Assembly (NCBI GenBank): GCA_010909165.1
Contig: MU008169.1
Location: 186,001 to 250,000, forward strand
Direction of reading: 5' to 3'
Length of the DNA stretch: 64,000 bases
DNA from: Anthoceros angustus
Taxonomy: Eukaryota; Plantae; Anthocerotophyta
In this document: positions 8,455 through 51,945 of the stretch, piece by piece
How positions within the stretch are numbered: position 1 is the first letter of the stretch
How the letters are laid out: every line of letters begins with the position of its first letter
The notes under the pieces: generated by a model
The model's database searches: none
Told to the model about the DNA's origin: nothing
What the model saw: only the letters and a program-made list of their open reading frames with translations
Made by a program: the position numbers and the translations under genes

Positions 8455-11400
8455 ATGGAGGACACAGGATCCCGGAACGACGCTCTCTTGTTTGGTAGGA
8501 TCTATGAGCTTGTCTAGCATACTCTTGAGTGTGCGTTCTGTTTGCATCTCGCAAAGAGCCAATTTCGATTCTCATGTTTAGGAGGGTTGGATTGCAGACA
8601 GAGTTATTTCCGCAACTGGCAAGCATGTTACAGTGGTCTATTCACGTCGCCACAAGGACGCTGGGCCCCGGCGGCCCTCGCAAGAAACACTCAAGAATGA
8701 TGTCAGCAAATCGCCGCAAGCTGTCCCCAGAGACAAGGAGAAGAAGTACAGTCTGATACTCAATTGCCAGAACAATCAAAATCGCGGTCTGCTGGGAGGT
8801 TGGAGGTCTTTCCCTCTCAGTTGTGACTCAGCTATTTTTCACACACAACTGGCAGGTCGCAGAGGGGTGCTGGCAACGTGGAGCAACACCGGCAGAGCTG
8901 GATCGACCGCTCTCTGTCACTCAGGCGAGTTCTTCCACGCTTGTCTGATTTCCTGCTCGTCCCTGCAAGCGGCGCTGGATCCGAGTGGTGCTGGATTGGC
9001 TGTAATTCGCATCCCCTGCTCGTGACAGGCGGAGGAGGAGCAGTATTGTGCATGCCCTGGACGATGGCTGCCCAGCAAACCAAGGAAATGCACGAGGAAA
9101 AGTAGGCGTCCCTTGCGGAGGAGTGGTACGTGCAAATAAGAAACTGTCCTGCCATTCCTACTAGTAGTGTGTAAACTGGCAATTAGTGACGGTGTTGGTG
9201 GATGTTGTGCTTCAGCAGATGCAAAGAAGGAAAAAGGCAGAGGCACCCATTGAATTTGTCGAAGAGCAGCAGGCCATGTTCGCTGAGATTGATGCCTTCC
9301 AGCTGGAAGAGTCAGTTCCCTCTCCTATTCACATCAGAGGCTGGAAAGATGAAAATTCGGATGCAACAGCTGTGGACATCACGTTGTCGTTCCATGCGCG
9401 GCATGCTCCTCTTGAAGCAGTTCCAGAAGATGCCTCAGGGGAGATCTCTCAGCAAACGCCCGCAAGCTATGTTCTTTCAAGGACCAGACATATGTTGGCT
9501 GCTGCGCTCTCAACTCCTGATGGCTTAGCAGACTCTTCCGTTGTATCTGCTCAATTCAAGCAGACATGGGATTATGGAAGACATCGGGATGGTGCTCAAG
9601 ACTCTACAGGATGTCAGAATGAGGTGGAAACGCTTGTGGAGCTGTTCCCTCGTTCCATCCGGGTCACTGATTCCGAGGAGGATCGAAGAATTTTCGAAGC
9701 TGAGCCTTGTGGCACTGCTGCTTCTTCTCTGGTCGAACCTCTACATGCTGATGCTACAGGGTCAAGCACTTGTCGATCCAAGGGGTCTAGAATTGGCCGC
9801 AAATCAAGGGCTAGTTCGTCTGTACCCCCTCCTGAACTACCAGATTTGTTTCGAACAAGAGAGTTGTGCCTGACACACTATAGTGGGGGCCTCATGCAAG
9901 AGAGCGAGTACAACGACTCACAGAACTGTTCTAGTCTGAGGAATCCAACAAGATCTGCCGCCCAGGAGCAGTCTATGGGACTTCTTAACGTTTGTAGGAC
10001 GGCTGACCTGACAAATGATCATTCCAGTGATAAACAGGGGGCCTCCTCTGTTCATGACTTCCAAGACGGGGAGTTGGTTGGTCCCAAAAGGTTATCCTTC
10101 AGCCATTCCAGGGCACCTTTCGGGCTTGCTGCTGAAAGTGAAGAGTCAACATTTCAGGAGCTTGCCACTCGACAAATATTCTCGACAAGCCCATCTCAAC
10201 ATCTACATCAAGTGGCCAGAGCAGGATCTCTTGCATCAGGCCTTGGAGCATTGACGCTGGACCGCCTCTCACTTCATGACAGAGCTGAACCGTACTCTGC
10301 AATTTTGGAAGAGGATGAGGAAGATGAAACAAATGAGAACATTACAGTCAAAGAGAATGGCAATGTATCATGCGTGGATGATGATACAGTGTCGATTTTC
10401 CATGGGCTCCTGAGAGAAAGTGGACAAACCCGTCTAACCACCCAGAGGGAGGCCATTTCTGCTTACTGGTAATGTCCCAACGACCTCACTGTCATCGGGA
10501 GTCCAAGTTATGTGTCTGGTGGATGGCTCTCACTTTCAGTAATAGCTGTACATTTTTGTTGCTGTGGCAGTGATATGAGCAAGATAACCAAAATTGGAGA
10601 AGGAACGTATGGAGAAGCTTTCAAAGAAGGCGACACTGTTCTGAAGATTGTACCTGTTGATGGGAACTTTCGCGTTAACGGGGAAATACAAAAGGTATAC
10701 GCAATCTGTTCAGTGCTTTGACCCATTCGTGTCAGGTGAAATTTGTCAAATTCAGACGTTGCTCACCACATTTTTGCAGACTTCTGCTGAACTCTACGAC
10801 GAGGTGCTTCTCTCCAGCACTTTGAACAAGTTGCAGCTGCCAAAAAGTTCAAACTTTTGTAGTAACTTCATCACCACTAAGGGGTAATAATCGTTTGTCT
10901 GGCTGAGAGGGAAAAAACTGTGGGTGACGTCTCTTTCTGGCAAGGTGGTGTATTATAGCAAGCAATGATCACCACTGCTGCTATCAGGATAAAGTATTGT
11001 CGAGGAAAGTATGACGAAGACCTAATCCGAGCATGGGAGGAGTGGGATAGCGAACACACATCAGAGAATGATCATCCAATGTCTTTTCCAGAACAACAGG
11101 TTTGCCTTGCTTACATGACTATCACTCACGATGTTTCCTATGCTGTGTCTCTGGCGACTGTTCTGGATGATGTACATCCAGTACTTTTCTAACTTTTGGC
11201 GGGAATTAGCGATATGTCATTTTTATCCTGGCAGATGGGGGGAAGGATTTGGAAAGCTTCGTTCTCGCAGACTTCGATGAAGTTCAAAGCCTGCTTGTTC
11301 AGGTAGGGCTAATTGTTCACAGCGCACTCTTTCCAGTCTGATGCATGCCATATCCACAGCTCTGCAACTCTTATGCCTCGGCGCAGGTTGTTCTCTCTCT

Positions 11401-14400
11401 TGCTATTGCAGAAAATGCGTGCGAATTTGAACATCGGGATCTCCATTGGTAATCCATCTTATCCCTCAGTTATGATCTCCTTAAGCTTGCTGGTATCGTG
11501 GGAGTGGCAGTTCCAGGGCTGTCAGTACTTCGATGAGGTGCAACTTCACTGTTATGCAGGGGGAACCTTGTGCTAGCTAGAACTGAGGACTACGCAAAGG
11601 CTTATTGCTTGGATGGAAATGCGCTACGGACTAGGACGTGTGGGTTGTCGTTGTCAATAATTGACTTCACCCTTTCACGAGTGAATACAGGTGCCGGCAT
11701 TTCTTGAGTCACCAGCCACCCGAAAAGAATCTCCCTTTCTGACCACGACTACAACGTCACGTTTATGTTCCTCGCAGGAAGGCAAGTTCTGTTTTGCAAT
11801 CTGGGAGCCGATCCTGCAATTTTCGATGGACCACCGAGAGATATTCAGGTACCCAGCTTTCTCAAAGGAGCGTACGGAGTTGCGGGCAGTTGATTTAATT
11901 AGAGTGCCTTAATTGCAGGCAGACACGTACCGAGGGATGTTGAAGATAACACAAGGACATTGGGAGGGAAGGTTGGCCTTGGACACAGCAACACCCTTCT
12001 TCTTATCGCCTCGACCCCTGTGTACCACTATGCGGTTCTCAGTAACATGTAATGATCTAACAGGTTTCCCAAGACAAACGTTCTGTGGATCCACTACCTT
12101 GCCAGCATTGTCCTCAACAAGAAATCTTTTGTAAGTTATCTTCCGCGGTCGTCCAGTGCATGACAGAAAAATGTTTGAGCACTTCGTTTTGGTTTGTGGT
12201 CCTTGTGAATCGTTTCCCAGATCTTGTCCTTAAGTTGTGTTTCTTTAGTACCTACCAGCTCCCAAAAGCTACTAACGGTTTAAATACTGAAATACCAATG
12301 ACATTAATTTATACTTGATCCTACATATGACCCTGAGGGCGCTGCTGAGGCTGCTGGGTTGATAACTTCTGACTGCTGAGGATTTGCATTGTTTGGCTTG
12401 AAGACAACCATGTCGCCTGGAAATAACATACCGATCATTCTTTTTTCCATAGAGGTGCTTGCCAGCAGTAATGTCTGGCTTGGCAGTTGAATCACAGCAC
12501 ACAATTTCTTTTCTGCCAGCTGGCCGAGGAACAAATGTTGACCCAGCGGCCTGAAAGCCAAAACCTCTGCTTTTCCCTGAAACTCTTTGCTGTTCATGAG
12601 TTCCTGTTCAATGAGCCTCATTATCTGAATTGTAGAAGGCCAGTCTGCGGCAAGTGTTTCTGGTGACGTACTCGGTCTATAACACTCTAAGTTGCAAATA
12701 CGCACAGGTTTTCCTTGACGGAGACCTGCTAATACGCCGTCCCACAACTTTGCATACTTTACTCCAGTTGCCTGAGTAGACTGTGGAGCCTGTTGCTGTG
12801 GATTCGCCGGGGGCTGGCCGAGTGTATGCTGAGGTTGGAATGGCTGTTGAAGAGTCTGCTGTGAAGTTTGTGTGATCGAAGATGGTTGCAAGCTTTGAGT
12901 AGGCTGTGCCATGTTAGAGAGAGGACCAGTAACTCCTGGTAATCTGTTTGCACCAACTCCTCCAACTTGAGTTGCTGCTCTGTTCGGAAGATTACTTCCT
13001 GATGTCAAACCCCCTGCGCTCCGTGAATTAGGTTGGCCAATAGCTGCAGTACCTAGACCCCTTACCTGGCCAAGTCCTCCAGCCAGCTGACCATTCGGAA
13101 TGCTGACAGCAGTAACCTCAGCCCTGCTCATCATCAAGTTTGCTGGCTGCATTCCAAAGGGACGTAACCCATTTGCAACATTTCCCTGTCCTGCAATGTC
13201 TACCTGCAGACTACTGACACCCACTTGACCTCCAAGTGTATTAGGTCCAATTCCCATGGACGCCTGGCCCATAGTAACTCCAGGGAAGGAGTTTACCCCA
13301 GTTCCCTGAGACGATAGGATATTTGCAACTCCCTGGAAGCTTCCATCCGCACCCTGCAAAGCACCATTGTTGGCCCCTCGCGATAGCTGTGTGACTGCAT
13401 GATAACCGGTTGACAGCACGTTTGCGTTGGAGACGAGAGAGGTACTTGTCACATCCTCCTGCTTGACCACAACATTTGAGACAGAGTTCAAGGTATCCTG
13501 TACTGCATTGGTGGACGGGGCCATACCAGTGCTGATCACAGGTACACCTGTTCCAGTCGCCACCTTAGTATTAGTAACCAAGACAGGTGGCAATCCTGAA
13601 GAAATCTCCATCTTAGCTTTGCCTGTAGGAACACTGACTGAATGTCCTGCAATTACACTTGCCGTTTGCCCTGACGTGAGCGGGATGTCATGAAGTTCAG
13701 CTTTCGAGACTGGAGGCAGAGAGGAGTTGTTCCCATTGATGCCCAAAACAGCACGGGCCTCCCAGAAACCATCAGAAAGAAGAACTGTATGGTAGGGATA
13801 CTGCTTGGGATAATGACTTCTTGGGTCAGTTGACCTTGAGTTCGCTTGGCCAAGTTGTAAACCGCGCGCAGCTGAGAGTCTTCTTGGGCAAATCACTGAC
13901 AAGGAGACATAGCATTGAGGGAACCACTTGGCCACATCCTCTGAATCAGCAAGGCGCCACTGTCGTGTCTCTGACTCTGAGGTGTTAGAGTCGCCATTAA
14001 AACTAATAGGTGGGGTGACGACAGGCTTTGGTATGCTGCAGGAGCAGATGTAGCTATCAGGAGGACGTGCTTGCCAGCAGTAATGTCTGGCTTGGCAGTT
14101 GAATCACAGCACACAATTTTCTTTTCTGCCAGCTGAACGAGGAATCCATGTTGACCCAGGCGTCCTAAAGCCAAAACCTCTGCTTTTCCCTGAAACTCTT
14201 TGCTGTTCATGAGTTCCTGTTCAATGAGCCTCATTATCTGAATTGTAGAAGGCCAGTCTGCAAGTGTTTCTGGTGACGTACTCGGTCTGTAACACTCTAA
14301 GTTGCAAATACGCACAGGTTTTCCTTGACGGAGACCTGCTAATACGCCGTCCCACAGCTTTGCATACTTTACTCCAGTTGCCTGAGTAGACTGTGGAGCC

Positions 14401-17328
14401 AGTTGCTGTGGATTCGCTGGCCGAGTGTATGCTGAGGTTGGAATGGCTGTTGAAGAGTCTGCTGTGAAGTTTGTGTGATCGAAGATGGTTGCAAGCTTTG
14501 AGTAGGCTGTGCCATGTTAGAGAGAGTACCAGTAACTCCTGGTAATCTGTTTGCACCAACTCCTCCAACTTGAGTTGCTGCTCTGTTCGGAAGATTACTT
14601 CCTGATGTCAAACCCCCTGCGCTCCGTGAATTAGGTTGGCCAATAGCTGCAGTACCTAGACCCCTTACCTGGCCAAGTCCTCCAGCCAGCTGACCATTCG
14701 GAACACTGACAGCAGTAACCTCAGCCCTGCTCATCATCAAGTTTGCTGGCTGCATTCCAAAGGGACGTAACCCATTTGCAACATTTCCCTGTCCTGCAAT
14801 GTCTACCTGCAGACTACTGACACCCACTTGACCTCCAAGTGTATTAGGTCCAATTCCCATAGACGCCTGGCCCATAGTAACTCCGGGGAAGGAGTTTACC
14901 CCAGTTCCCTGAGACGATAGGATATTTGCAACTCCCTGGAAGCTTCCATCCGCACCCTGCAAAGCACCATTGTTGGCCCCTCGCGATACTTGTGTGACTG
15001 CATGGTAACCGGTTGACAGCACGTTTGCGTTGGAGACGAGAGAGGTGCTTGTCACATCCTCCTGCTTGACCACAACATTTGAGACAGAGTTCAAGGTATC
15101 CTGTACTGCATTGGTGGACGGGGCCATACCAGTGCTGATCACAGGTACACCTGTTCCAGTCGTCATCTTAGTATTAGTAACCAAGACAGGTGGCAATCCT
15201 GAAGAAATCTCCATCTTAGCTTTTCCCGTAGGAACGCTGACTGAATGTCCTGCAATTACACTTGCCGTTTGCCCTGACGTGAGCGGGATGTCATGAAGTT
15301 CAGCTTTCGAGACTGGAGGCAGAGAGGAGTTGTTCCATTGATGCCCAAAACAGCACGGGCCTCCCAGAAACCATCAGAAAGAAGAACTGTATGGTAGGGA
15401 TACTGCTTGGGATAATGACTTCTGGGTTGACCTTGAGTTCCGCTTGGCCAAGTTGTAAACCGCGCGCAGCTGAGGAAGTCTTCTTGGGCAAATCACTGAC
15501 AAGGAGACATAGCATTGAGGGAACCACTTGGCCACATCCTCTGAATCGGGCGCCACTGTCGTGTCTCTGACTCTGAGGTGTTAGAGTCGCCATTAAAACT
15601 AATAGGTGGGGTGACGACAGGCTTTGGTATGCTGCAGGAGCAGATGTAGCTATCAGAGGACGTGCTTCTGCCTGTCGGATCCAGTTACGTTTGCCACACT
15701 TTGCCCTGGAATACACATGAGAAGAGCCTCTGCCAGCCCCTCAGCCATACCCACTTCCCCAAACCCTCCCCACTGAACTGAATGTTACAGAGCCATTGAA
15801 GGAAGATATCCATATTGCTGGTCCAGCCCACCTGCTGTACCAACCCTGCATGATTAGCATGATGGCTGTTGAACAAAACCAAACCAGTTTCTCCTGGGGT
15901 AACTGACAATTTCTGCCCATTAACATCCTGACCATAGAAAGCTCGGACAATTTTCTCAACATACTCCCTGTGTATGAGGCCATTGATATCCCAAAGCAGC
16001 TGTACTTTCAACCACCACTACCAGCTGACGAAGTTGAGATGCCATCTTGTGTAACATCGCACAGGCTGCATGACAGACCCTGCTCAACCTACATTGCCAT
16101 GACGAGGACTCAGATCATTCAGTTAGACAACTCTGATCCCATGGTGTTGCTCATGCAGAACTGTTCCACGAAGCAGAAACGAGACCTGTTCCAGTCGTCA
16201 TCTTAGTATTAGTAACCAAGACAGGTGGCAATCCTGAAGAAATCTCCATCTTAGCTTTGCCTGTAGGAACACTGACTGAATGTCCTGCAATTACACTTGC
16301 CGTTTGCCCTGACGTGAGCGGGATGTCATGAAGTTCAGCTTTCGAGACTGGAGGCAGAGAGGAGTTGTTCCCATTGATGCCCAAAACAGCACGGGCCTCC
16401 CAGAAACCATCAGAAAGAAGAACTGTATGGTAGGGATACTGCTTTGGGATAATGACTTCTGGGTCAGCTGACCTTGAGTTCCGCTTGGCCAAGTTGTAAA
16501 CCGCGCGCAGCTGGGGAAGTCTTCTTGGGCAAATTACTGACAAGGAGACGTAGCATTGAGGGAACCACTTGGCCACATCCTCGGAATCGGCAAGGCGCCA
16601 CTGTCGTGTCTCTGACTCTGAGGTATTAGAGTCGCCATTAAAACTAATAGGTGGGGTGACGACAGGCTTTGGTATGCTGCAGGGAGCAGATGTAGCTATC
16701 AAGAGGACGTGCTTCTGCCTGTCGGATCCAGTTACGTTTGCCACACTTTGCCCTGGAATACACATGAGAAGAGCCTCTGCCAGCCCCTCAGCCATACCCA
16801 CTTCCCCAAACCCTCCCCCACTGAACTGAATGTTACAGAGCCATTGAAGGAAGATATCCATATTGCTGGTCCAGCCCACCTGCTGTACCAACCCTGCATG
16901 ATTAGCATGATGGCTGTTGAACAAAACCAAACCAGTTTCTCCTGGGGTAACTGACAATTTCTGCCCATTAACATCCTGACCATAGAAAGCTCGGACAATT
17001 TTCTCAACATACTCCCTGTGTATATGAGGCCATTGATATCCTAAAGCAGCTGTACTTTCAACCACCACAACCAGCTGACGAAGTTGAGATGTCATCTTGT
17101 GTAACATCGCACAAGCTGCATGACAGACCCTGCTCAACCTACATTGCCATGACGAGGACTCAGACCATTCAGTTAGACAACTCTGATCCCATGGTGTTGC
17201 TCATGCAGAACTGTTCCACGAAGCAGAAACGAGACCTGCGTTCCTTCCGCAAGCGAGTCCTGCTCTATGATTCCGCCAAAGCGGTAGTGTCGGATGACTT
17301 CTTCCACGATATATGGGTTCAGTCATAG
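8455..17328 (+). CDS. HASPIN: Haspin (histone H3T3) Ser/Thr kinase, 15 exons, 839 aa
   Basis: Phase-consistent exons: 8455-8494, 8598-8745, 8856-8924, 9029-9101, 9216-10468, 10571-10694, 10780-10883, 10988-11099, 11210-11302, 11387-11448, 11560-11690, 11778-11848, 11919-11971, 12064-12130, 17209-17328 (sum 2520 nt). Motifs: FAEIDAF, KIGEGTYGEAF, KIVPVDG, WEEWD..SENDHP, GGKDLESF, EFEHRDLHWGN, IIDFTLSR, FPKTNVLWIHYL, and C-terminal KRDLRSFRKRVLLYDSAKAVVSDDFF. All match plant haspins. The four short 5' exons are less certain than the kinase exons. Confidence 0.93.
12304..14072 (-). CDS. MED25: MED25/PFT1 module 4: late vWA domain, low-complexity middle, ACID domain and stop; intronless
   Basis: The 543-aa ORF ends KYAKLWDGVLAGLRQGKPVRICNLECYR...WPSTIQIMRLI...LCAVIQLPSQTLLL...MIGMLFPGDMVVFKP, which is the plant MED25 ACID domain. 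Short compensating frameshifts occur near 13830-13870 and ~14042. Confidence 0.92.
14073..16045 (-). pseudogene. MED25: MED25 module 3: start codon through most of the ACID domain, frameshifted, fused to module 4
   Basis: ATG at 16045 (ATGGCATCTCAACTT). Near-identical to modules 2 and 4 but with many 1-bp indels. It breaks after VIQLPSQTLLLA and jumps to KHVLLIAT at a GTGCTT microhomology (14067-14072). Confidence 0.85.
16159..16206 (+). pseudogene. Truncated copy of haspin terminal exon
   Basis: Same acceptor context (GTTGCTCATGCAG|AACTGTTCC) as 17209. It reads NCSTKQKRDL and then switches into antisense MED25 sequence at ACCTG (16184-16188), giving FQSSS*. Confidence 0.8.
16189..17095 (-). 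CDS. MED25: MED25 module 2: clean N-terminal vWA domain, 3'-truncated
   Basis: MTSQLRQLVVVVESTAALGYQWPHIHREYVEKIVRAF...LVQQVGWTSNMDIFLQWLCNIQFSGGGFGEVGMAEGLAEAL...SLSVICPRRLPQLRAVYN matches the PFT1 vWA domain. It is open for ~300 codons without introns. Confidence 0.9.
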
Positions 17329-17599
17329 GGCTACGACGCAGTGTGTAAGGACTTTGACGCTGGAAAGAGCAGCATGTGTGGAGGATTTTACTGCTCATCG
17401 TAGCAATTTATACGAACAATGCTGTCTTAGGGTTTCGTCGTTTGGCGAGTCTAACCTCAGTTACTTTCGCCGAGTTAATGCTGTGGGGGTCTGGGTTAAC
17501 TTCTGCAGTCTAATGCCCGGCCGCTCCAGATAGCGATCGTGGCAGAAGCGGTCATGCATTTTACCCTCAGAAGTTTGCACTGACGTAATCGGAAGCTCG

Positions 17600-18307
17600 G
17601 GAAGTTCAACTTTCGACGGGCCTCCCAGAAACCATCAGAAAGGACTGTATGGTAGGGGTACTGCTTGGAAGTCAGTTGACCTTGAGTTCCGCTTGGCCAG
17701 GATGTAAACCGAGCGCAGCTGGGGGAGAGTCTTCTTGGGCGTATCACTGACAAGGAGACGTAGCAGTGAGGGAACCACTTGGCCACATCCTCTGAATCTG
17801 CAAGGAGCCATGGCCGTGTCTCTGACTCCGAGGTATTAAAGTCGCCATTGAGACTACCTAATGGGTGGGGTGACAACGGGCTTTGGTATGCTGCAGGGAG
17901 CAGATGTAGCGATCAGTAGGACGTGCTTCTACCTGTCCGATCTAGTTACGTTTGCCACACTTTGCCCTGGAATACACATGAGAAGAGCCTCTGCCAGCCC
18001 CTCGGCCATACCCACTTCCCCAAACCCTCCCCCACTGAACTGAATGTTACAGAGCCATTGAAGGAAGACATCCATATTGCTGGTCCAGCCCACCTGCTGT
18101 ACCAACCCTGCATGATTAGCATGATGGCTGCACAAAACCAAACCAGTTTCTCCTGGGGTAACTGACAATTTTCTGCCCATTAACATCCTGACCATAGAAA
18201 GCTCGGACAATTTTCTCAACATACTCCCTGTGTATATGAGGCCATTGATATCCCAAAGCAGCTGTACTTTCAACCACCACAACCAGCTGACGAAGTTGAG
18301 ATGTCAT
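17600..18307 (-). pseudogene. MED25: MED25 module 1: diverged, internally deleted vWA copy
   Basis: ATG at 18307. It carries substitutions as well as indels relative to module 2, has an internal deletion near 17615, and similarity stops at ~17600. Confidence 0.85.
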
Positions 18308-18420
18308 CTTGTTTAACATCGCACAAGCTGCATGACAGACCCTGCTCAACCTACATTGCCATGACGAGGACTCAGACCATTCAGTTCGACAACTCTGATC
18401 CCATGGTGTTGCTCATGCAG

Positions 18421-18510
18421 AACTGTTCTGCGAAGCTGAAGCGAGACCTCGTTCCTTCCGCAAACGAGTCCTGCTCTACAATTACGCCAGAGCGGCAGTG
18501 TCGGATGAAC
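18421..18510 (+). pseudogene. Diverged, frameshifted third copy of haspin terminal exon
   Basis: CTCATGCAG|AACTGTTCTGCGAAGCTGAAGCGAGACCTCGTTCCTTCCGCAAACGAGTCCTGCTCTAC aligns to 17209 onward with substitutions and a 1-bp deletion. Confidence 0.8.
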
Positions 18511-18655
18511 TGCCACTTCCACACACCCTCCCACGTTGAACTGAATATAAGAGCCAATGGACACACACATCCTTATTCCGTGTTCAGCCCACCTGCTGTG
18601 TCAAGTGTTCCTCCGCATTGTGGTCCACCCCACCCGCTGGACCAAACGTGCATGA
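18505..18655 (-). pseudogene. Old, highly diverged MED25 vWA relics (two fragments)
   Basis: The minus strand reads SHARLVQRVGWTT and TQQVG*TRNKDVCVHWL..IQFNVGGCVEVAV. Both align to NHAGLVQQVGWTSNMDIFLQWLCNIQFSGGGFGEVGM. Confidence 0.7.
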
Positions 18656-18871
18656 GAAACAGAATGACTTGCTGGACAAAATCACAGCAGTGTCCCTTGA
18701 GATAGCAGACAATTGCCGTTAGAGGCAGGCGACTTCGTGTGCGAAAGCTGGATTCGGAGACAAATGAGGGGAGAAGCTGCGCAGGTCAGGACGCCAAAGG
18801 GCTAAATTACCATTCTAGTGGTCCCTTTGCGATTTAGGGTTTGTTCGCTTAGTGACTTGCCGTCCTCGGGA

Positions 18872-20136
18872 ATGTGCAGCAGGTCGCTATCCTGCGGGTC
18901 TGGTTCAATTGCTGGCTGGAAAATATGCTCAGCCGAGGTCAAGCTGTATTTCTCCTGGCAGTGGCAGATCCGGAATATGGTTGTGGCCTCAACCAACGGT
19001 TGTGGCACTAGCTTGGCAGCCCTCGTTGTTCCTCGAAGCAATGCTCAACAGTGCTCATCAGATGCGTGCCTTGATGGATCTCCCTTGCTTCAGCAGGGTT
19101 CTGTCGAAGTTCTGGACCTTCCGGTTCCCCTTACTCCATTCAGCTCCGAATATGCCAGATCGGTAGAGCTGGAGCGGGCGATGGTGGCAGAAGCGGCCAT
19201 GCAGTCTAGTGAGGGAGTCAGCAAGCAGCACATTGTTTATGAGGATGAGTGGTTTACAGTGTTCAACAAGCCTTCGGGGATCTACTCCGAGCATGTGCTT
19301 GCCACTGTCAAGTCCATGCTACGGGACGGGGACTTGGAAACTCGTGAACAAGGTGCAGGGTGTTCGTTTTGCTTTTTTGTATGTTGCTGGCACGCGCTCA
19401 TTCCCTTGCTGCTTTCTGTGCAGCTGAGGATTTTCAACCTTTCGCCCACATGGTGAACCGTCTAGATCGTGACACCAGTGGAGTGCTGGTGGTGGCAAAG
19501 TGCAAGGATGCTTGCGGGAAGCTGGCCAATATGTTCACAAAAAGGCAGGTGGAGAAGGCGTACGTGGCTCGGTGTGCTGGAAGACTTCCAGAGTGGACGG
19601 GCATGCAGATTGAGTCCGGGCACGGAAGGTCCAGGTTCGGTGCGTGGCGGGTCTACTCGGTCCACGACATTGGAAGAAAGCTTCCAGGCAAAGGAGGGTC
19701 TTCTATAAAGGACATGAAGACAATCTTTCAGGTGATTGGGCCCAGGGCTCCTGCACTTGTTGCTTCTTTTGAGGCTCTCAAGTTGAAATCATGCATTGAG
19801 GATGGCAGTGTCCCAGCAAGGAAAGTGCTGGTCGTTGGAAATGACATGACAGAGGATGCAACCAAGAACGACTACAAGCCTGCAGAAGATGTTGAGATCA
19901 TCCTTCGTGCAAGCCCTTTAACCGGTAGAACACATCAAATAAGGCTGCACTGCTGCTACTTGGGAATGCCCTTGATAGGCGATGTGAAATACGGTGGACC
20001 TCATGAGTGGGATGGCACTAAGTATGATGCCCATTGCCTGCACGCGGAACGCTTGTCCTTCAAGCATCCCATCACTAAACAACCTGTGCTAATTGTTGCT
20101 CCCCATCCTAACTGGGCACCTAAGGAAATGTTTTGA
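18872..20136 (+). CDS. RluA-family RNA pseudouridine synthase (plant At1g56345-like), 2 exons
   Basis: Exon 1 runs to 19353, GT-AG intron 19354-19423, exon 2 is 19424-20136. Motifs: IVYEDEWFTVFNKPSG, catalytic NRLDRDTSG, SGHGRSRFGAWRVY, TGRTHQIRLHC, GDVKYGG, LHAERLSFKHP. The start could be ATG 18872 or 18977. Confidence 0.93.
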
Positions 20137-24228: not shown

Positions 24229-27057
24229 GCTTTCCGTGAAGATCATTCCAGCATACTTTCAGGTTTCCATACCTTGGAGCATACTAAGGGATTGTAGGCT
24301 CCCTAGTTCATAATGAGGATCGATCTCCAAGTGGTGGTTACTCAGTTGGAAAAAGATGAACCATACAACTACGCCATATGCCGCTACGCGTTATTGTTCA
24401 GGACTATGATGCAAGCTCACATGTTTATTGAGGGTGTGTCACTTGTTTCATAGGTATCTCCCAGGTGGGTGATGCAAAAGTATGAAGTCATGTAAGTGGG
24501 CCGGTGCAATATTATTCTGATTGTTAGCCAGGCGATTCCTCGCTCCAAGAACATGCAACGGCCTTCGCGGTAGGGATTTTATTAGGTTGACTCTCTGAGT
24601 TCAAGATGAAGAGTGCCTCGAGCTACTAGACAGGCTGCAAGAAAGGCACTTCTTTTGCCTCTTCTCCATCAAGTGAGCAATTGCTCGACACCCAGAAGTG
24701 TTATTATTTTACGAGCTAATACAGTGTACATTCAGGACTTGTTTGCTGCCATACGTGATGCAGAGACCACATCGGCCGGACCATAGTTAGGAAGATCCTA
24801 TGTTAATAGGCCAAGGACACCAGGAAATCAAGGTATCTTCTCGTGAACCGGATACGCATACGACCACACCTTGAAATAGCTAAAAACCTCGCAGTAACCT
24901 TTGCCAATCGCCGTGCTCTTGTGATGTGCTCGTGCTTGTCTATGGTGGTAACCATAGTGTCAGTGTCCCTCCCAACTACTACCCTTGCTACAATTTCTCT
25001 AGTATTCTACCTTGCAGGCATTGCACTGTGCTGGTTTTTGTAAGTGCCCACACTATTTGATCAAAGTACGTAACACATCTCTCCGAGTGCAAGCGCTAGC
25101 ATTTTTTGTTCTTCCTCATAATCACAAAAATGCTAAAACGACGCATTTATACGGAACGGACTTTTGTGGACTCCGGACCACAAATTCGGGCGACATACTC
25201 AATCCTATGTCGCGGTCGAGATGTCTAACTCTAAGGGAATGGTTCCGTCTGCTCACTGCTTCTTTAACTACTCCATACTCCTAGCTAGTCTAAGCCGCTA
25301 TCAAGCAATGCCGACCACACTTCCGAATTCCTCGACATTTAGGAGTGAGAAAGCGTAATTCCCCACGACGCAACACGCATCCTCTGAATCAGTTCTACTA
25401 TGACGATCGGGCTGGGGCCGACGTAGAAGGCGGGGCCGTAAACGATGCTCAAGGTGCCTCCCGACCCTTCCAAAGAATCGAAAGCAGTAATAATCCACCC
25501 TTCGTAACACACCTGGCCGGAAGTTATGTAGCCGGCCCAACCATACCACCGCTCGAACTCTCTACTTTGCACTCTCTGCTCACCTCTCCACTTCATGTTC
25601 CATATCAAACTCTACCTAATGTGCTTTATACCGGGCCGAACGCTTAAGGACTCAGTTCATGCCCTTTCGTGTTTGCCCTCAGGGGCAATTCTATCCCATC
25701 CTTTCTTCACTGCTCTTGCACTGCTAGGTGTGGCCAGGGTACTGCGCTCGCGATAGGGAAATGCCGAGTCACAGCACTTCCTGGCCCATATCCACATGGT
25801 CCAAACAGGCCCCAAAGCCTCCCCACCCTCATCGGGTCGTCTCGTTCCCTTGTCCGCCCGGCCCATCTCACACCAATATTCCTGGCCCTTGGAGGAGCAA
25901 GGCGTCGCGGTTCCTCGCCGCCACCGCATTCACCCTCCATGCGTGCTAGGTCTGGCACACCGGCAACCGGAGGTCCTCTCCAGAGTAGTTCCGCCCACTT
26001 GGTGACCTCTCCTGCATCGCATTAGCATCGATTCATGCGAGCCTGCGATGCACAACACGGGACCAACCCTCAAAAGGAAAATCGCATTCGAGGGATCACT
26101 AAGAATTTCCCTTCTTATATCGCTTCTAAGGTGCGTGGCCTTTATTACAACCCGAATGTTGGCCCTACTTCTAGCTACCTGCACACGCAAGAGGAATGCC
26201 CGATCTCATCGCTGGCCACAGGCTACCTACATCTATGACAGCTTGACAATGGGGTCATTGCTGACTCCTCAATGACTCTTATCCGGCAAATTTCAACTCC
26301 CCAACCCTAGGGTTGGAAGAAACTTCGCAGTTGCACTTCGTCTTGTCGCGGTTAGGTCTAGTCCAAAGGCGCTGCAGCTGGGCGTGGTTGGCAGCTCTAT
26401 GGTTTGGGATCGTATTCTCGGTGATTTGGCCGAGGCCGCTCGACAAGCCTACAACACCTCCCATTGCCCGTGACTTGGATGCTCATGGTTCGGGGAGCAG
26501 TGTCGACGCTATAAGAAATGGGGAGGAGGAGGGCTCATTATCTATTTGCGCCATCGTCGATGGCGTGCACGCCAGCTGGCGGTCACCGGTGCCAAAGGGC
26601 GAGGAGGAAGGCTAGCCAGCCGCCGCCTGCATGCTAGTGGAAACTGCCCGCCATGGCATACCGGGGCCAAAACCGAGTGCGCGCAAGCGCGTGGGCGATC
26701 TGCCGCCTTCCCCAGCACGAGGTGGGGCGGAGTGGATGCCTGGGAGGGTCCTTCCATGGAGCCTGGATGGGAAAGGCATGGTAAGCCCTCGGGGAGGGGA
26801 GGTGCACGCACCGCTGCGGGAAGGTGCTGGGCTGCATGGCGAGGAGGAGAGGGGAGTCGCAACATAATCCTCCTCATCTCCATCCTCCCCGTCTCCAAGA
26901 TGTTTCGCTAATCATGGAGCTAGGGTGCAGTGGACTACCCGAATTTCAAGCGAAAACGCTGGGAGTATGAAAGGGGCCTCCCCACACCTAGAGATTGTAA
27001 CAGAATGAATTGCACGAGGTGCAAGAATGAGGACCGCGTGTGGAGGATGATGGTGGC

Positions 27058-27960
27058 TGTGGGATCAGCCTGATTGGGGTTAGGAAATTAGGTAGGATTT
27101 TGTTTTTCAGGTGGTAGCCAAGGATAGAACGAGGCTAAAAGGAGGGAAATAAGCCCAAGCAGCATCCTGGACTACCGAGTATACCGACCCGTGAGTGAGG
27201 AACGCATTAGACCCACGATGGCGCGCGACGGGGTAAGACCGACCCACTCGTGACCGTGACCAGCAGTACGCCAGGAAGGTAACTTAGTTGGAGCGTAAGG
27301 ACGATCACACGCCACGTGACGATTTCGAGTGGAGGACGCATGCAGCGGGTCAGACTGTGAATTCGCCAGCAGGCCGCAGCAGTGTATTCACGCCTGGCCG
27401 CGCGGGCGGTAAGGCCGCAGTACGCTGGTAGAGCCAGAGTAAGCCCGCGCAGTGCTCTGCGCCATGATGGTGGAAGAGGCGCCCCGCCTGCCGGTTACTC
27501 CCGGCGGTCGCGAAGAAGGCTACCAGGCGGCTCGAGACACTTTCGATTTGCGCCCGCAACCCCGCTCGCAGATCTCGGGACACTGACGCGGCGCGGCTCA
27601 CCGCTGAGGCCTGAGAAGCGAACGCGCGGAGGTTTGCCAGCCTCACAAGCGCGACAGAACTAAGGAGAAGAAGGCGATGGCACCCAAAAGCCCGCGAAGT
27701 TTGGGAGCCATGGAACCTGTGGAGCGCAACATTGTGACCCGCGCTATCCGGACTTTGGGCTCGCCCGTGAAGCGGGAATTGGTGGAGTGGCATTGGACGT
27801 GTTCCAAATGGTCGACCTTTGACGTCACCGTCCGGAGTTTGCCCTAAGATGTCAAGGCGGTCAACAAGGAGGTGCGGTCCAAGAACCTCCGAGAGGACCC
27901 AAGGCGATGGACCTTGAGGTCCGGGCGGCCTACAACCGCCCAAGGAGGAAGAGGGGAGGT
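27058..27960 (+). mobile_element. Truncated extra copy of the gypsy LTR 5' end, part of a ~1.18-kb tandem duplication that includes host flank
   Basis: 26785-27960 is repeated from 27961. Both copies contain host flank followed by the TGTGGGATC..GGGGTTAG LTR start; the junction lies in GCCCTC. Confidence 0.8.
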
Positions 27961-28241
27961 GCCCTCGGGGAGGGGAGGTGCACGCAAATCACGCTGCGGG
28001 AAGGTGCTGGGCTGGGCGAGGAGGAGGGGAGTCGCAACAATCCTCCTCATTCCATCCCCCCGTCTCCAAGATGTGGGCAGCTGGCAATCGTGGGCAGTTT
28101 TCTAGGGTGCAGTGGACGACCCGCCGTTTAGCGCAAACGTGGGAGTATGAAAGTGCCTCCGTTACACCGGGAGATTGTAACGAAATTGCACGAGGCAGTG
28201 CAAGAATGAGGACCGCGTGCGTGTGGAGTGATGATGGTGGT

Positions 28242-31200
28242 TGTGGGATCGCGATTGACTGGGGGTTAGAAATTAGGTAGGATTTTGTTTTTGTGAGCAA
28301 GGATAGAGGCTAAAAGGAGGAAATAAGCCCGTTAGCACTGGACGCACTCGAGTATACTCCGACCGGAGTGAGGAACGACTTAGACCTACGATGGCGACGG
28401 GTAAGACCGACCCACCTGTGACCGTGTGATAAGTACGCTGTGGAAGGTAACTTAGAAGTTGGAGCGTAAGGACTGACCGGGCGACGCCACGGGACGACTC
28501 GAGTGGAGGACGGCATGCAGGTCGACCGTGAATTTTGCCAGGCCGCATAGTTATTCACGCCCGCGCGCGCGCGGGGGCCGTAGTACGGCAGGGCGTAGCG
28601 CTGCAGGCTGCGTGCACTAAGGCTACGGATGGAAGAGGCGCCCCGCCGCTTCCCGGGCGTGGTCGCGAAGAAGGTCATCAGGCGCTCGAGACCTCGCGAT
28701 CTGCGCCCGCAACCGCTCGCGGTATCTCGGGACACTGACGCCTGCGCGGCTCACCGCTGAGGTCGGAGAAGCGAACGCGGCGAAGGAGGCTCAACGCGCC
28801 AGCCTCGGCAAAAGAACCAAGGGAGAAGAAGGCGATGGCACCCAAAAGCCCGCGAAGTTTGGGAGCCATGGAACCTTGGAGCGCAACATTGTGACCCGCG
28901 CTATCCGGACTTTGGGCTCGCCCGTGAAGCGGGAATTGGTGCAGGAGTGGCATTTGGACGTGTTCCAAATGGTCCGACCTTTGACAGGTCACCGTCCGGA
29001 GTTTGCCCAAGATGCGGGCGGCGGTCAACAAGGAGGTGCGGTCCAAGAACCTCCGAGAGGACCCAAGGCGATGGACCTTGAGGTCCCAAGGCGGCCTACA
29101 ACCGCCCAAGGAGGAAGAGGGGAGGTGCCGAGCCCTCAAGGCGGGGAAGATAGGTCCCCACAGCAGCGGCCTCGACGCAACGGACCACCAAACGTTGGTC
29201 GATATCCGACCTGCTGGACCGAGTCGTGGCGGTGGCCCGGATCATCGCCCATCTGAACTCTACCACCAAGGTGGATCACCTTGGTGATAATCTATTAGTG
29301 TTCCCGCACGCTGGGAAGAGGGCGACTGGGAAGGATTACTCGCCCGGCTTAGCCTGAAGCTCAAGCTCGGAGAAGCCTCGCCATCTGGCCGCCCCATACC
29401 CGATCCATGTATGGGGCATTTCAACTCCTCGTGGAAGGAGAGCTTGAGCGAGCGCCCGAAAGGACTGAGGCCTCCCAAGTGGAGCGGCAAGGGCGCCGGA
29501 GGAGGAGGCCGACAAAACCAAACGGACTCGGAGGAGGATGACTGAGGATTCCTGACTCCATACGCCTGAGCGGACCCTCACCACCTGTGGAAGTATGGAA
29601 GCACCCCTCCCTCCTTCCGTGCCCCAACTGCATAATGCCACAGAGAAGTGTACCCTCATGGCCATCACTCACTGAGGAGCCCCGCTGCACTGTGAGAGAG
29701 CCAAGAAAGACTTACCAACGCTGTACCCCGGCCACAAGACTCTTCCCCGCCGACGAGTGGCAAGAAGTGAGGAAGTGAGGAGGCGTAAAGGACGCCTGTG
29801 GAGCGGAGGACACCGGCAGCAGCCTGATCCGAGCCGGGTCCTGCCGGCGTGAAGGGGCAAAGGGCGGCTCCCTGACTCCATCACCTCCGCCGAGCCCGTG
29901 GAGAAAAGGGCGAGAAGGAGTCATGCGCCAAAAGGAGGGGAAGCCCGAGCCAGACTGTGACCTAAGGGTCCCGATTGTCCGAGAACCGACTGACGCCCGG
30001 ATCATGGAGGGGTCCTCGACTGACGGAGATGCCGCCCCACGGACTTTGTGGGAGCCTCACTCAGCAGCCGTGGAGGAAACACGGGGTCCTGCCACCGCCA
30101 TGGACGATGCCTGGGTCTCAAGGGATGGCCGAGAAGGCCTGGAGGTGGAAGCCACCCGAGGCGCATGGGTCCTCCGTGAGCAGCTGGGGAGCCCAGGCGA
30201 GGGAAGGCCAAGCCTCGCAGGATTGAGGAAGGAAAACGCCGGAGGCGGAGAGGGAGGTCGTCCATCCGCAAGGACGACTAAATTCCTTCACCGAGGAGGA
30301 ACAGCAAGTGCCAAGGAGGCCCAAGCGGGCGGAGGACCTCCGCAGTGAGGGGCGAGCGCAGAAGGTGAGGACGCCCGGCAAGCGAACGGGCGCGGATCTC
30401 GAGGCAGCCCGACCGACCAGAGCCAAGCCGAGAGGCTGTGAAGGTGGCCAAGGAGGCGGAGGCCACGGCGGGCCGATCGCGATCACCAGTGATCGAACCG
30501 GTGGAGAGAGGCGAGAGAGCCGGCCAATCAAGGCCGAGCAAGTGGTCAAGGAGCAAGCACGAGCCGTGAGGAGGCGCTGAGGCCAGACCCGGGAGGTTGG
30601 GGACCCTGTGCACTGCAGGAGGTAGAAGGGCGAGGTGGAGCCGGAGGAACAAGGACACTTTGGAGTTGCAACCCAAGACGACGGAGCAAGCAGGGGTTCT
30701 CAACGAGAGAATCCAAGACTTCGAGAGAGGTGGAACGCCCAGCCCGGGCTTGAAGACGGAGGAGAACAGCGGCAAGGAGTTCGACCGCCAGTTGCAGCAG
30801 GACGGCAAGCTGTGAGCCTGACGGGATACCGCCCGCCCGGAGAAGGAAGTGGAGGACCTCCGGAAAGAATAGAAGAAGGAGGAAGGCAATCGGAGGAAAA
30901 GGTACATCTTGCCAGAAGCAAGGAGCACCCCATGGCCCGCAACCGTGAGTCAAGCAACAACGGAGGAGGAGAACGCCGAGCAAGGCAAGAGGTAACTGAG
31001 GCAGCCTTGACGGCCTCAAGGGAGTCCGCCCACAACCGTGAGCTTGGCCACGAGATGCAAAGGGCGATCCGCCTGGGCCACGAGCACCTGGAGGAGGGAC
31101 TGCCCGGCTCATGTGGAGGAGGCGATCTGCAAGTCGATCGACCGCCTACCACCAGAGCCCTCAAGGCCTGAGGTCCCGCGCCACCCCAGGAGGGTGGACC

Positions 31201-33060
31201 TGGGACCAAGGAGGAGCGAGGGAGGACGGACGGACAGACAACCGCTGGAGTCCTAGGAGCTGCTTGACGACGGCAGCAGGCGGGAGAGCATGGAGGAACC
31301 GGAGGAGGAGGGGCGCCACACCGAGGTAAGCCAGACCTCGCATGGAAGGACGAGGGAGGATCTTGAAGGGAAAAACCGGGCATTCGGGAACCAAGGGAGG
31401 GCCTGGATGAACCTGGCTAGCCCGGCGAGGAGGCATGCCCAGAGTCGAGGTCCTGACTTGTCCCGACTCCCAGGAAAGGCCGGATGAGGTCCCCTCAAGG
31501 AAGTCTGACCTAGGGATCCACAGTGACGAGTCCGGCCCCGAGGTCCGGACCCTGTGGAAGGGTTGGTCCAAGACGGACCTAGAGGCCCGGCCCCGAGGAC
31601 CGACTCAAAGAAGGCCGGGCTGAGACCGACTGAGGGAAGACTGACCTAGAGGTCCGGACCGAGTCGACAGGTCCCGAGGTCCAAACCCGGGAGTGGGGAG
31701 AGCCATCCACCAACCCCAGCAGATCCAACCCCTTGAGGGCCCACCGCAGGGCCCGCCGAGAGAGAAGAGGAGGACGAGGAGACTTGGTGGCGTCACCGCC
31801 GCACCGGTGGCGCACGATGCCCCTGAAGAGGAAGGGGCGCCACACCGAGGTAAGCTCAAGACCTCGCATGGAAGGACGAGGGAGGATCTTGAAGGGGGGG
31901 GGGCAACCGGGCATTCGGGAACCAAGGGAGGGCTCTGGATGAACCCCTAGCCCGGGCGAGGAGGCATGCCCAGAGTCGAGGGTCCTGACTTTGTCCGGAA
32001 GGACCCCCGAGGTCCGCCTCCTGGAAGTCCGAGGATCCAGACCTAGTGACGAGTCCGGCCCCGAGGTCCGACCCTGTGGAAGGGTCCAAGACCGGACTCA
32101 GTCCGGCCCCGAGGACCTGACTCAGAAGGCCGGGCCAGGACCTGACTGGAGGGAAGACCGGACCTAGAGGTCCGGACCGAGTGAGACAGGTCCCGAGGTC
32201 CAAACTCGGGAGTGGGGAGAGCCACCTCACCAACCCAAGATCCACCTTGAGGGCCCATGCAGGGCCACGAGAGAGAAGAGGGAGGACGAGGAAGACTTGG
32301 TGATCTGTCGCCGCCACGGTGGCGCACCGATGCCCTGAAGAGGGGGCCTACCGGATCATCCGATTGGCGCCTGCACTGGCTGTGGCACCGCCGCCAAGAA
32401 GGAATGACTATCCCACCACCGACGGCGAGAAGTGGAGGGTGGTAGGCGGCGGGTTAGCATACCGAGCCGGGCCTCACCGTAATAGAGGTGTAATAAAGGC
32501 GCCGACCTTCGGCGAGAGGGCTAAGGCCGCTCAATAAATCATCTTCTTGGTGTTGATGCCGCTGCACTGTGTCTTCTGCTAACGTGAGTCCCGAGTCACC
32601 GAGGTACCATACCCGGGAGATTGATCGTGGTCCCGTGACGACCTAACGTGTGTGTGTGGTGATCAGGTGCTCGCCCGAGCCGCGCGACCGAATCTGACGA
32701 ACGCGTGAGCCGGAGGAACTCCGGAGGGCGGCAGCCCGGACGGAGAGGCCCGCGAACGAGAGGAGGTCCGGATCGTAACCCGCAAGGCTTTTTTCTAAGA
32801 CCGAGGAGTGTAGCGAGGTGAGAGAGAGGAAAGGATGTGTGAGGACGGATGTGAACGATACGGACGCGAACGGGTCTCAAACGCTTGGCCATACCGGCCC
32901 GTGACGGTGAACGCTGGAAGTTAGAGTGTGTGGAGAACGAGCGCTAAGAGTAGGAATCACCAAACGCGCAAACGGAGCCTATCATTCCTTTGGGAACGGA
33001 TTTCTTCCTACAACGACACGGATTGTGCGCGCCTACCGCCATCACGAAAGTCGCGCCACA
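28242..33060 (+). repeat. 5' LTR (4.8 kb, includes an internal ~525-bp tandem duplication at ~31300-32330)
   Basis: Colinear with 39759-44082 along its length and ends GTCGCGCCACA immediately before the PBS. Confidence 0.85.
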
Positions 33061-33279: not shown

Positions 33280-36200
33280 TAACGCCGACCAAGCGATTCT
33301 CTCTTGAGGTAAGAAGGAGAGAGACCAAACCTTCGTGGAGGATTTTGTGTCTCGCAAACTTCAACGGAGAAGGTTGGACGCCTCATTCAAATTGCTCCAA
33401 GGTCCCGCGGGCTGGTATCGGAGGAAATACGACCGCCTGTAACGCACCGCAACCTTCAAGATTGAAGGATGCCTTCAGAAAGATTCCGCGAATCGATCAA
33501 GAAGGCTATGTTGTCCAAACTCGAGAATCAAGCGAGGAAAGACGGAGAAGTTGGGATCAGACATCGAACGGTTCTACGCCGGACCGCACCCCACTCACAC
33601 TACCATGCAAAGGTACGTTGGTTCGCAATGGCTTATCCAAGCCCAAAGCACGTGCTAAGAGAAAGATGTGAGCAAGGCGGAGAACTATGAAGAATCGATG
33701 CACCAACGACGGCCGAGGACTCCAGGAGGAAAGAAGAAAAGAAGAAGGGCCTGGATCAAGATGAAGAACCCTGACGGAGGATGATGAGACCGAGGCACGA
33801 GGAAGAGGAAGAGGACTCAAGAAGAATCCGAGGAGTGGAAGAAGAAGAACCTAAAATAAAGAAGAAGAAGCCCGAGTAGTGAGGGTGGAAAGAAGGAGGT
33901 CATGATGCCCGCTCCAGAGAGGTCCCGCCACCCTCCTTTGAAGGAAGTAGCGGCCGAGGGAAGATCTAGAACGGTAATGAAGAGGGTGGAGGAGTTGACG
34001 ATCAACCGTGAAGGATAAAGAACGCGGCGGCCACCACGGTCCGACTCATCTGGTGCGTGTGTCACCAACATGGGCATTCAAGGCCAACCGCCTCCGCACG
34101 TGGAACCGTGGAGTACGACTACGGGAAGAGTCCGAGGAGGACGATGAGACCGAGGCACGGAGGAAGAGGAAGAGGACTCAGAAGAACTGAGGAGGCCATG
34201 GAAGAAGAAGAACCCCAAAATAAAGAAGAAGAAGCCCGTGAGTGAGGGTGGAAAGAAGGAGGTCATGATGCCCGCACTGACGAGAGGTCCCACCCGCCCC
34301 TTTGAAGGAAGTAGCCGAGGGAAGATCTAGAACGGTAATGAAGAGGGTGGAGGAGTTGACGATCAACCGTGAAGGATAAAGAACGGCGAAGGCCACCACC
34401 ACGGTCCGCATTTATGGTGTGCGTGTCACCAACATGGGCATTCAAGGCCAACCGCCTCCGCACGTGAACTGTGGAGTACGACTACGGGAAGAGTCCGAGG
34501 AACAAAGTGGAGGACGATACCAAGTGCAAGAAGCACAACCGGACCACGAGATCCTGTGATGTACACACGGCTTGGTCCGTCATCGATCGACCGATGCAAA
34601 GACGCATGGGAGCCCTCCGTGAATTCTGGCGGCGTGGTCTGCTGGAACTGGGAACCCCCACTACTCCAACGCGTCCCATACCCCACCGCAAGGCATAACG
34701 GAGACTTTGAACGGTGTGGAGATTAGCAAAGGGCACATGCCGAGGTACTCAGGAGAATCCTCGCTCGAGGGTATGCGCTCGCACCCTGGGAGCCAAGACC
34801 ACCACGCCCTAAACTGTATATAAATTGAAGACGACAATCATGGAGGGAGGAGGCACCGAGGAGCTCGAACGAGGTGGTACCAAGTTCAAGGAGAAGAAGG
34901 CGGACCGAGGTACCGGAAGTGTCAACCCGAGTCGCAAAGGAGCGAAGGAACGGAGACAAAGAGGAAGAAAATGAGGATAGTCCCACTGACACGGAGGACT
35001 AACACCCGCTGAAGCCGAACCCGCCAAAGAGGACGAGTTAAACCGGGCCCGCCAGAGAAGAAACCAAAAGCCACCGGAGTCTCCGAGAAGGACTCACCCA
35101 CGGCAACGCCAGCTTCCACCGGATGTGGTTCGAAGTGACCGAGATGCTTCAAGAAGAACTCCGACAGACCGATAGTCCGCCACCACAGCAAAGAGCCAAA
35201 CCGGAGGAGACAAGGCGAACGCGGACGCGGGCAGAGAACCACCCGCCCTTTCAAGGTGGCCGACTTGATGATGGACCAACAACACTTGGTGTCCCTTAGC
35301 GAGTTAAAGGACAACCCGGCATCGGCTGTGAAGTCCGAAGGCCATCGTGGAAACGCAACCACGCCGGAACTCCGGCAAGGGCAAGAACGTGGAGGTAAGG
35401 GTCGATCTCATACGGACTCGCCAGCAGTGGAAATTGCGGTGTAATTAAAACGTGCCTCTAGACACGGGTCGAGTGAACCTCATCACCGAGGCCACCGCAA
35501 GACGGCCGGGTTCACCACCTTCGAGCCATCCACCAAAACCCTCGTGATGGCGGATATCAAGCGAGCCAGGGAGTTGTCCCGAGTCCAAGCCACCATAGCG
35601 GAGCCCCTATACATTAGATTTTGTCACATCGACCCGGACTGGGGTATGAGGTCCTTAGCGGCGGCCGGGCCTCGCTGCATAAAACTACACTTGGACGGAA
35701 GGAGACACTGCCGGACTGGGATCCAAGGTGAGGGAAGGACGCAGCGACACTGAGTAAGGACACATCGTGGAAACCACAAGACTGTAGGGTACACCTCCGC
35801 CAAGACAAGGGGACGATGAACGCGAGGATACGAATGAGGACTACCCTTTCCCAAAATCACGTGGTCAAGGAGGAGATGGATTAATGAGGGACGCCTTTGG
35901 AGCGAGGTGGACGAGGAGGTCATCGATTGTTTTAGGTGGACTCATGACCAAGAGCCGGGAAGGCAATCAAGAGGAGGGTCCAGCAGAGACGGGAAGTAGA
36001 ACCGAGGAAGTAACCTCCCACTGACGAGCTCTTCCGGAGTGGGGAATGCGTGAAGATGAACCCGATGGAGGACGGAACACCCGAAGCCGAACCCGCCAAA
36101 GAGGCGAGTTAAACCGGGCCGCCAGAGAAGAAACAAAGCACCGGAGTCTCGGGAGAAGCGGACTCACCAACGCAGCTTCCGGATGTGGTTCGGAAGTGAC

Positions 36201-51900: not shown

Positions 51901-51945
51901 ATGCTATAAAGTAGGGTATAAAGGGCCTATTTACACAAATAGTAN

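Follow-up and report, generated by a model that had tools for sequence, protein, structure and literature searches.

A MED25 gene antisense within the last intron of a haspin kinase gene: a probable intronless retrocopy, assembled with a 2.6-kb duplicated block of doubtful standing

The window (the whole stretch of 64,000 nt that was analysed) carries on its plus strand a gene for haspin, the mitotic histone H3-Thr3 kinase, and on its minus strand, within the last haspin intron as assembled, coding sequence for MED25, a general Mediator subunit. Haspin was modelled from 9186 to 17328, with an open frame and GT-AG at every boundary; additional 5′ exons may lie upstream of 9186. The features of the locus are as follows, in window positions.

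9186-10468, 10571-10694, 10780-10883, 10988-11099 and 11210-11302, plus strand: first five modelled haspin exons.
11387-11448, 11560-11690, 11778-11848, 11919-11971 and 12064-12130, plus strand: next five modelled haspin exons.
12131-17208, plus strand: last haspin intron as assembled, 5078 nt (~2440 nt minus the extra block).
17209-17328, plus strand: haspin terminal coding exon (NCSTKQKRDLRSFRKRVLLYDSAKAVVSDDFFHDIWVQS, then stop), to which the C-termini of homologues align at 45-68% identity.
12304-13563, minus strand: C-terminal part of MED25 (linker, Q/P-rich region and ACID domain), stop codon TAA at 12306-12304.
16202-17095, minus strand: N-terminal part of MED25 (VWA domain; Pfam Med25_VWA, 2e-37), ATG at 17095-17093.
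13564-16201, minus strand: extra 2638-nt block defined by self-BLAST and tblastn, frameshifted partial MED25 (residues ~1-695).
14064-14072: junction J1 of a 1.6-kb head-to-tail duplication (12452-14072 and 14064-15667, 96.9% identical).
16184-16188: junction J2 of a 1.05-kb head-to-tail duplication (15149-16188 and 16184-17238, 97.3% identical).
17616-18508, minus strand: older partial copy f, 92% identical to 16391-17297.
18513-18599, minus strand: small old VWA-like remnant, 78% identical to 16798-16886.

The haspin introns in the model measure 102, 85, 104, 110, 84, 111, 87, 70 and 92 nt, followed by 5078 nt; the first-pass annotation had given ~70-115 bp for all but the last, which agrees with the 70-111 nt found here. 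The donor and acceptor of the last intron were read from the sequence as AAATCTTTT/gtaagt at 12130/12131 and ctcatgcag/AAC at 17208/17209. Haspin homologues were retrieved with exon 2 as query against 1.84 billion representative proteins, and 12 full-length homologues were colinear with the window exon by exon in tblastn, their ...KKSF ending at 12130 and the following ~37 residues mapping to 17212-17322 with identities of 45-68% (68% for residues 644-680 of P0190). The kinase domain of the model, including the C-terminal helix, is colinear with these known members, and PF12330 (Haspin_kinase) is present in homologues P0190 and P0147. Donor, acceptor and terminal exon are accordingly retained at the coordinates proposed for them earlier. 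None of the 12 homologues matched 12131-12303 (tblastn), and the 39-aa terminal exon had no match in a sequence search of the PDB. Read-through from the exon ending at 12130 (exon 14 in the first-pass annotation) adds VSYLPRSSSA and then a stop, and haspin transcripts could often end without the terminal exon.

All data from public runs were used as contigs, in which neither strand nor transcript ends can be read. Runs X1 (RNA) and X2 (DNA) are from organism A, X3 (DNA) from organism B and X10 (RNA-like) from organism C. Three haspin introns are visible as GT..AG joints in RNA contigs of X1 and X10, and those of X1 establish that this run contains RNA. Haspin coverage in the contigs is low, and the contig graph branches where haspin meets MED25 RNA. 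The joint from 12130 to 17209, which had been put forward as a check on the nested arrangement, is absent from every contig of all runs searched, so that this junction rests on homology and splice signals; haspin would then be spliced across the MED25-bearing intron.

On the minus strand, a 328-aa open reading frame at 16151-17137 matches Med25_VWA (PF11265; E 2e-37, profile positions 2-211 of 213), and a 543-aa frame at 12304-13935 matches 345 MED25 homologues. The ACID domain aligns with the solved MED25 chain 8y4l_A (E 9e-47, residues 4-128 of 130) and is 60-69% identical to that of MED25 from other land plants. The MED25 coding span (12304-17095) lies wholly within haspin intron 12131-17208, between the last two coding exons and on the opposite strand. 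Its stop and the haspin donor are separated by 173 nt, and its ATG and the acceptor by 113 nt, both distances as annotated before. Using MED25 of Marchantia, Physcomitrium and Diphasiastrum and two transcriptome proteins as tblastn queries, single unbroken alignments were obtained across MED25 residues 116-722 and 7-309; MED25 at this locus is therefore without introns. As assembled, the MED25 frame stops after 328 aa. Removal of 13564-16201, as in an RNA contig described below, leaves one intact frame of 717 aa (~715 aa had been predicted for a collapsed gene), and only with this block taken out is MED25 colinear over its full length in one frame. The product resembles plant MED25/PFT1 in its N-terminal Med25_VWA domain, long low-complexity linker and ACID activator-binding domain, and is colinear with the Marchantia, Physcomitrium and Diphasiastrum proteins; it differs in its length (717 aa versus about 830-890), in the lack of introns and in ending ~30 residues past the ACID domain, with no long C-terminal Q-rich tail.

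Self-BLAST resolved the region into the layout a-b-c, b′c′d′, c′′d′′-e, that is, two abutting duplications, and together with tblastn bore out the earlier view that the region holds MED25 more than once. A description of the 5078-nt intron as essentially one reversed MED25 mRNA, on the other hand, does not hold, since the intron contains the extra 2638-nt block. This block also contains a truncated copy of the start of the last haspin exon (16159-16188), so that the terminal exon occurs in three versions, starting at 16159, 17209 and 18421, and of the four pieces of MED25 that the window contains, three carry frameshifts. Both junctions are clean, with no gap and no N, and show microhomologies of 5-6 nt (GTGCTT at J1, ACCTG at J2). 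Tandem Repeats Finder did not detect these repeats, whose period exceeds 500 nt.

The third terminal exon belongs to copy f, which comprises the MED25 5′ end with a frameshifted VWA and, from 18421, the haspin exon with a 1-nt deletion. An X1 contig (17469-17600) runs into copy f, and loose ends at 17297 in X1 and X2 correspond to 18509 onwards; as both borders are seen in the two runs, copy f is a genuine feature of organism A. Organism C does not have it: a second, small X10 contig lacks roughly 17345-18565.

X1 contigs of MED25 differ from the window at 0-3 positions (none in 16202-16582, three in 16590-17041). In one RNA contig (1131 nt), 13563 is followed immediately by 16202, and 243 nt fit either side of the joint. 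A genuine 2.6-kb block, spliced out of the MED25 pre-mRNA as a duplication-born intron so that the gene stays functional, would agree with the loss of exactly one repeat unit from this contig and the restoration of the reading frame, and two positions are GC-AG compatible (GCCT at 16259 and 16395). However, the motif ACCT does not occur in the shared 243 nt, so the collapsed RNA is not a canonical minus-strand GT-AG splice of the assembled structure; the 10 modelled haspin introns upstream are only 70-111 nt; and no RNA contig has the window's own d′ variant, the full X1 depth at 16092 carrying another base. Such an intron is considered very improbable.

Contigs of X1 also contain a second allele over 12083-12296, with 10 differences from the window, and X2 carries only this second allele (haplotype X, the expressed window-type sequence being haplotype W). 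The flanks of the two haplotypes differ by ~3-3.7%. An X2 contig passes from 12118-12445 straight into b′ (14067-14648); its depth across this a-to-b′ passage equals that of the flanks, so that X2 has the 1.6-kb unit only once. Compared with b′c′ over 1.24 kb, X2 shows 5 substitutions but 21 gap letters, and the window lacks the C at 15334 and the GTCA at 15425 that X2 and organism B both have. In organism B, a 6.2-kb X3 contig comprises 11650-13072 and 14673-15530 and runs upstream into haspin exons, and a 398-nt X3 contig holds the MED25 start with the first 30 nt of the last haspin exon. In organism C, a 3241-nt X10 contig runs from 17344 to 16606, then from 13961 to 11916, and continues into spliced haspin exons. 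One repeat unit is skipped in each of X1 RNA, X10 RNA, X3 DNA and X2 DNA, and neither J1 nor J2 is seen in any run. The 5078-nt length of the intron stands for the assembly; the extra 2638 nt are absent from the RNA, from the other haplotype and from both relatives.

Organism A thus presents two haplotypes 3-4% apart at this locus (12083-12296 and 11655-12445). X1 RNA holds both and X2 DNA one, though both runs are filed under one sample, and the material may be mixed or heterozygous. An X2 contig tracks the window to 15787 and continues with 110 nt absent from the window (beginning GTCGAGAAATGGGAAGG); this loose end may represent another MED25-like locus or a structural variant of that haplotype.

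The substitutions in the extra block resemble haplotype X. In a three-way alignment, the second half of c agrees with c′, and c′′ corresponds to haplotype W save for its first 18 nt, which agree with c′; J1 and J2 are therefore both embedded in apparently X-derived sequence, and the changes between W and X occur inside homologous stretches. Measured against the expressed frame (Nei-Gojobori), dN/dS was 0.19 for b′c′d′, 0.05 for the second part of c and 0.17 for copy f. Values of 0.17-0.19 argue for constraint on both copies, and all are far below the expectation for drift of one partner since duplication, so that the block acquired its substitutions as a functioning allele; its frameshifts are errors or date from very recently. 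Codon-position counts alone did not separate one neutral copy from two constrained ones.

Two readings of the block were weighed. Were the assembly correct, two tandem duplications would recently have arisen in MED25 through microhomology, templated by the homologous chromosome or a second haplotype and leaving an allele truncated after 328 aa and giving haspin a premature decoy acceptor at 16158/16159. The block could indeed be a real variant of the sequenced individual: its junctions are clean, with microhomology and no N, and the older copy f, whose junction is of the same type and which is confirmed in X1 and X2, marks the locus as prone to duplication. Against this, J1 and J2 occur in no run, the window-identical W-type RNA is collapsed, X2 and organisms B and C are all single-copy, and the ratio of indels to substitutions relative to X2 is abnormally high. 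A correct assembly is on balance doubtful, and we lean towards the block being an artefact or otherwise unrepresentative. On the favoured explanation, the extra 2.6 kb are two abutting duplications built from second-haplotype sequence, whether as an assembly or consensus artefact or as a very recent private rearrangement. It resembles false assembly duplications (haplotype retention, gap filling, chimeric reads) in its abutting copies of ~97% identity, one with the variants of the other haplotype and an excess of indels, and in its absence from independent data; it is unlike them in that its junctions have microhomology and no gap. The real last haspin intron is probably ~2.4 kb (~2.44 kb), and neither the 5-kb size of the intron nor the serial duplication is likely to belong to the expressed haplotype.

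As a control for artefacts, the remaining abutting duplications of the window were considered; all being old (9-21% diverged), they were uninformative on the MED25 block. These are four further exactly abutting head-to-tail repeats (26785-29129, 31299-32343, 33763-34501 and 34993-37123) with units of 0.4-1.2 kb, overlaps of 2-13 nt and a substitution divergence of 9-21%; three of the four overlap sequence that recurs at 39776-44082, and all look like old internal repeats, not recent events. The sole N of the window is at 51945, far from haspin and MED25.

MED25 appears to be expressed, as judged from contigs that carry no strand information, and not to be a dead retrocopy, a possibility the first-pass annotation had allowed for: RNA-derived contigs cover it and its collapsed frame is intact. 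X1 contig depth is 41-58 over MED25 and 9-12.5 over spliced haspin, which hints at a greater abundance of MED25 RNA, although contig depth cannot rank genes. The contrary reading, that the locus is a decaying array of MED25 retropseudogenes, with a functional MED25 elsewhere and the RNA derived from haspin pre-mRNA or contaminating DNA, draws on the frameshifts in three of the four pieces and on contigs that show no strand. It is hard to reconcile with a collapsed frame intact over 717 aa, dN/dS between haplotypes of 0.05-0.19, an ACID domain as conserved among land plants as this one (60-69%), MED25 contigs several-fold deeper than spliced haspin in a run that splices haspin introns cleanly, and a single-copy gene conserved in organisms B and C; we give it very little weight.

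With its ATG 113 nt from the haspin acceptor, MED25 must have its promoter and 5′ UTR in or beyond the haspin terminal exon. Within that exon, at 17229, X1 reaches a total depth of 47, to which a variant contig contributes 6. The haspin donor is spanned by X1 contigs of depth 20 and 13 over 12083-12296, and an uninterrupted contig of organism C extends from 17344 to 11916. Depth and continuity of these strandless contigs tentatively suggest that MED25 mRNA overlaps both flanking haspin exons in antisense. Transcription would start in or just beyond the terminal exon and cross the whole intron into exon 14, which would make haspin and MED25 an overlapping sense-antisense pair, with interference or double-stranded RNA formation between the two possible. 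The nesting proposed earlier thus holds for the coding sequence, and the transcript is probably not confined to the intron.

The intronless MED25 in the haspin intron is conserved in organisms B and C, relatives of organism A. In a more distant plant (L001, GCA_965154635.1), haspin has an intron at the same phase-0 position, after KKSY, of only 191 nt (14978/15170), and no match to MED25 was found in the 25-kb haspin locus. The MED25 gene of Marchantia occupies 7026 nt in at least 7 separate pieces, and there is no haspin within 10 kb of it. The pairing for which related genomes were to be compared is hence found in the two close relatives and not in these two plants. The short intron of L001 and the intron-rich gene of Marchantia point to an ancestral state of a short haspin intron and a separate, intron-rich MED25. 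Since MED25 is intronless inside a pre-existing intron, where its Marchantia orthologue has introns, retroposition is the best explanation, and on the sequence comparison MED25 most likely arrived as a retrocopy in the existing haspin intron. The retrocopy would have landed in this short intron in a common ancestor of the present organism and at least two close relatives. Neither a poly(A) remnant nor a target-site duplication was found in 12131-12303, which has T/G-rich stretches and no T-run; these marks may have eroded. Taken together, we think it likely that the locus holds a functional, intronless, antisense retrocopy of MED25 in the last intron of haspin, with a single 717-aa frame and an intron of ~2.4 kb when expressed.

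Protein-coding genes nested in introns are a well-known class, catalogued in Drosophila and mammals (PMC3814207, PMC8467205, PMC3192792), as are functional or 'orphan' retrogenes (PMC3548309, PMC4972966). Like the catalogued nested genes, MED25 has its whole coding sequence in one host intron on the opposite strand and is kept among relatives, with transcriptional interference possible; unlike them, it nearly fills a host intron of ~2.4 kb, compared with ~100 nt for the other haspin introns, and its transcript seems to extend over the host exons on either side. It shares with functional retrogenes an intronless structure relative to intron-rich orthologues, apparent expression, purifying selection and a new position, and departs from them in having no poly(A) tract or target-site duplication. 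The best matches of the sequence mark its source as a bryophyte-like plant. To our knowledge, few nested genes have been described in such plants, and no report of MED25 as a retrogene or of the haspin/MED25 pair was found in the literature.

The locus offers a clean, conserved plant case of a nested gene that fills almost the whole of a host intron measuring 191 nt in L001. It can serve to date a retroposition and to examine whether two housekeeping or cell-cycle genes are constrained by overlapping in antisense. It also shows that haplotype mixing can mimic serial duplication. An annotation that overlooks the lack of the 2.6-kb block in transcripts would contain a truncated MED25 and, for haspin, spurious alternative terminal exons. 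A bolder reading, which we hold to be possible without favouring it, is that the only MED25 of the lineage is this retrocopy, that its mRNA extends from the haspin terminal exon into exon 14 in an obligatory overlap kept through speciation, and that the locus is still spawning duplications of the MED25 start and haspin end. If true, expression of a Mediator subunit and of a mitotic histone kinase would be locked together in sense-antisense overlap that has persisted across species.

Within copy f, 280 nt (18170-18449) are 98% identical to 16958-17237 of the main copy, and the rest is ~90% identical. The 98% stretch covers the MED25 start, its 5′ flank and the haspin acceptor, a pattern that suggests recent gene conversion or a mosaic origin. 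The VWA-like remnant behind copy f is also present in organism C, directly after the haspin stop codon, where the X10 loose end corresponds to 18605 onwards. Further downstream, at 18818-19456 on the plus strand, a 212-aa open reading frame has a motif like that of RluA-type pseudouridine synthases (HIVYEDEWFTVFNKPSG); its position leaves ~1.5 kb downstream of haspin for the MED25 promoter, and much less in organism C.
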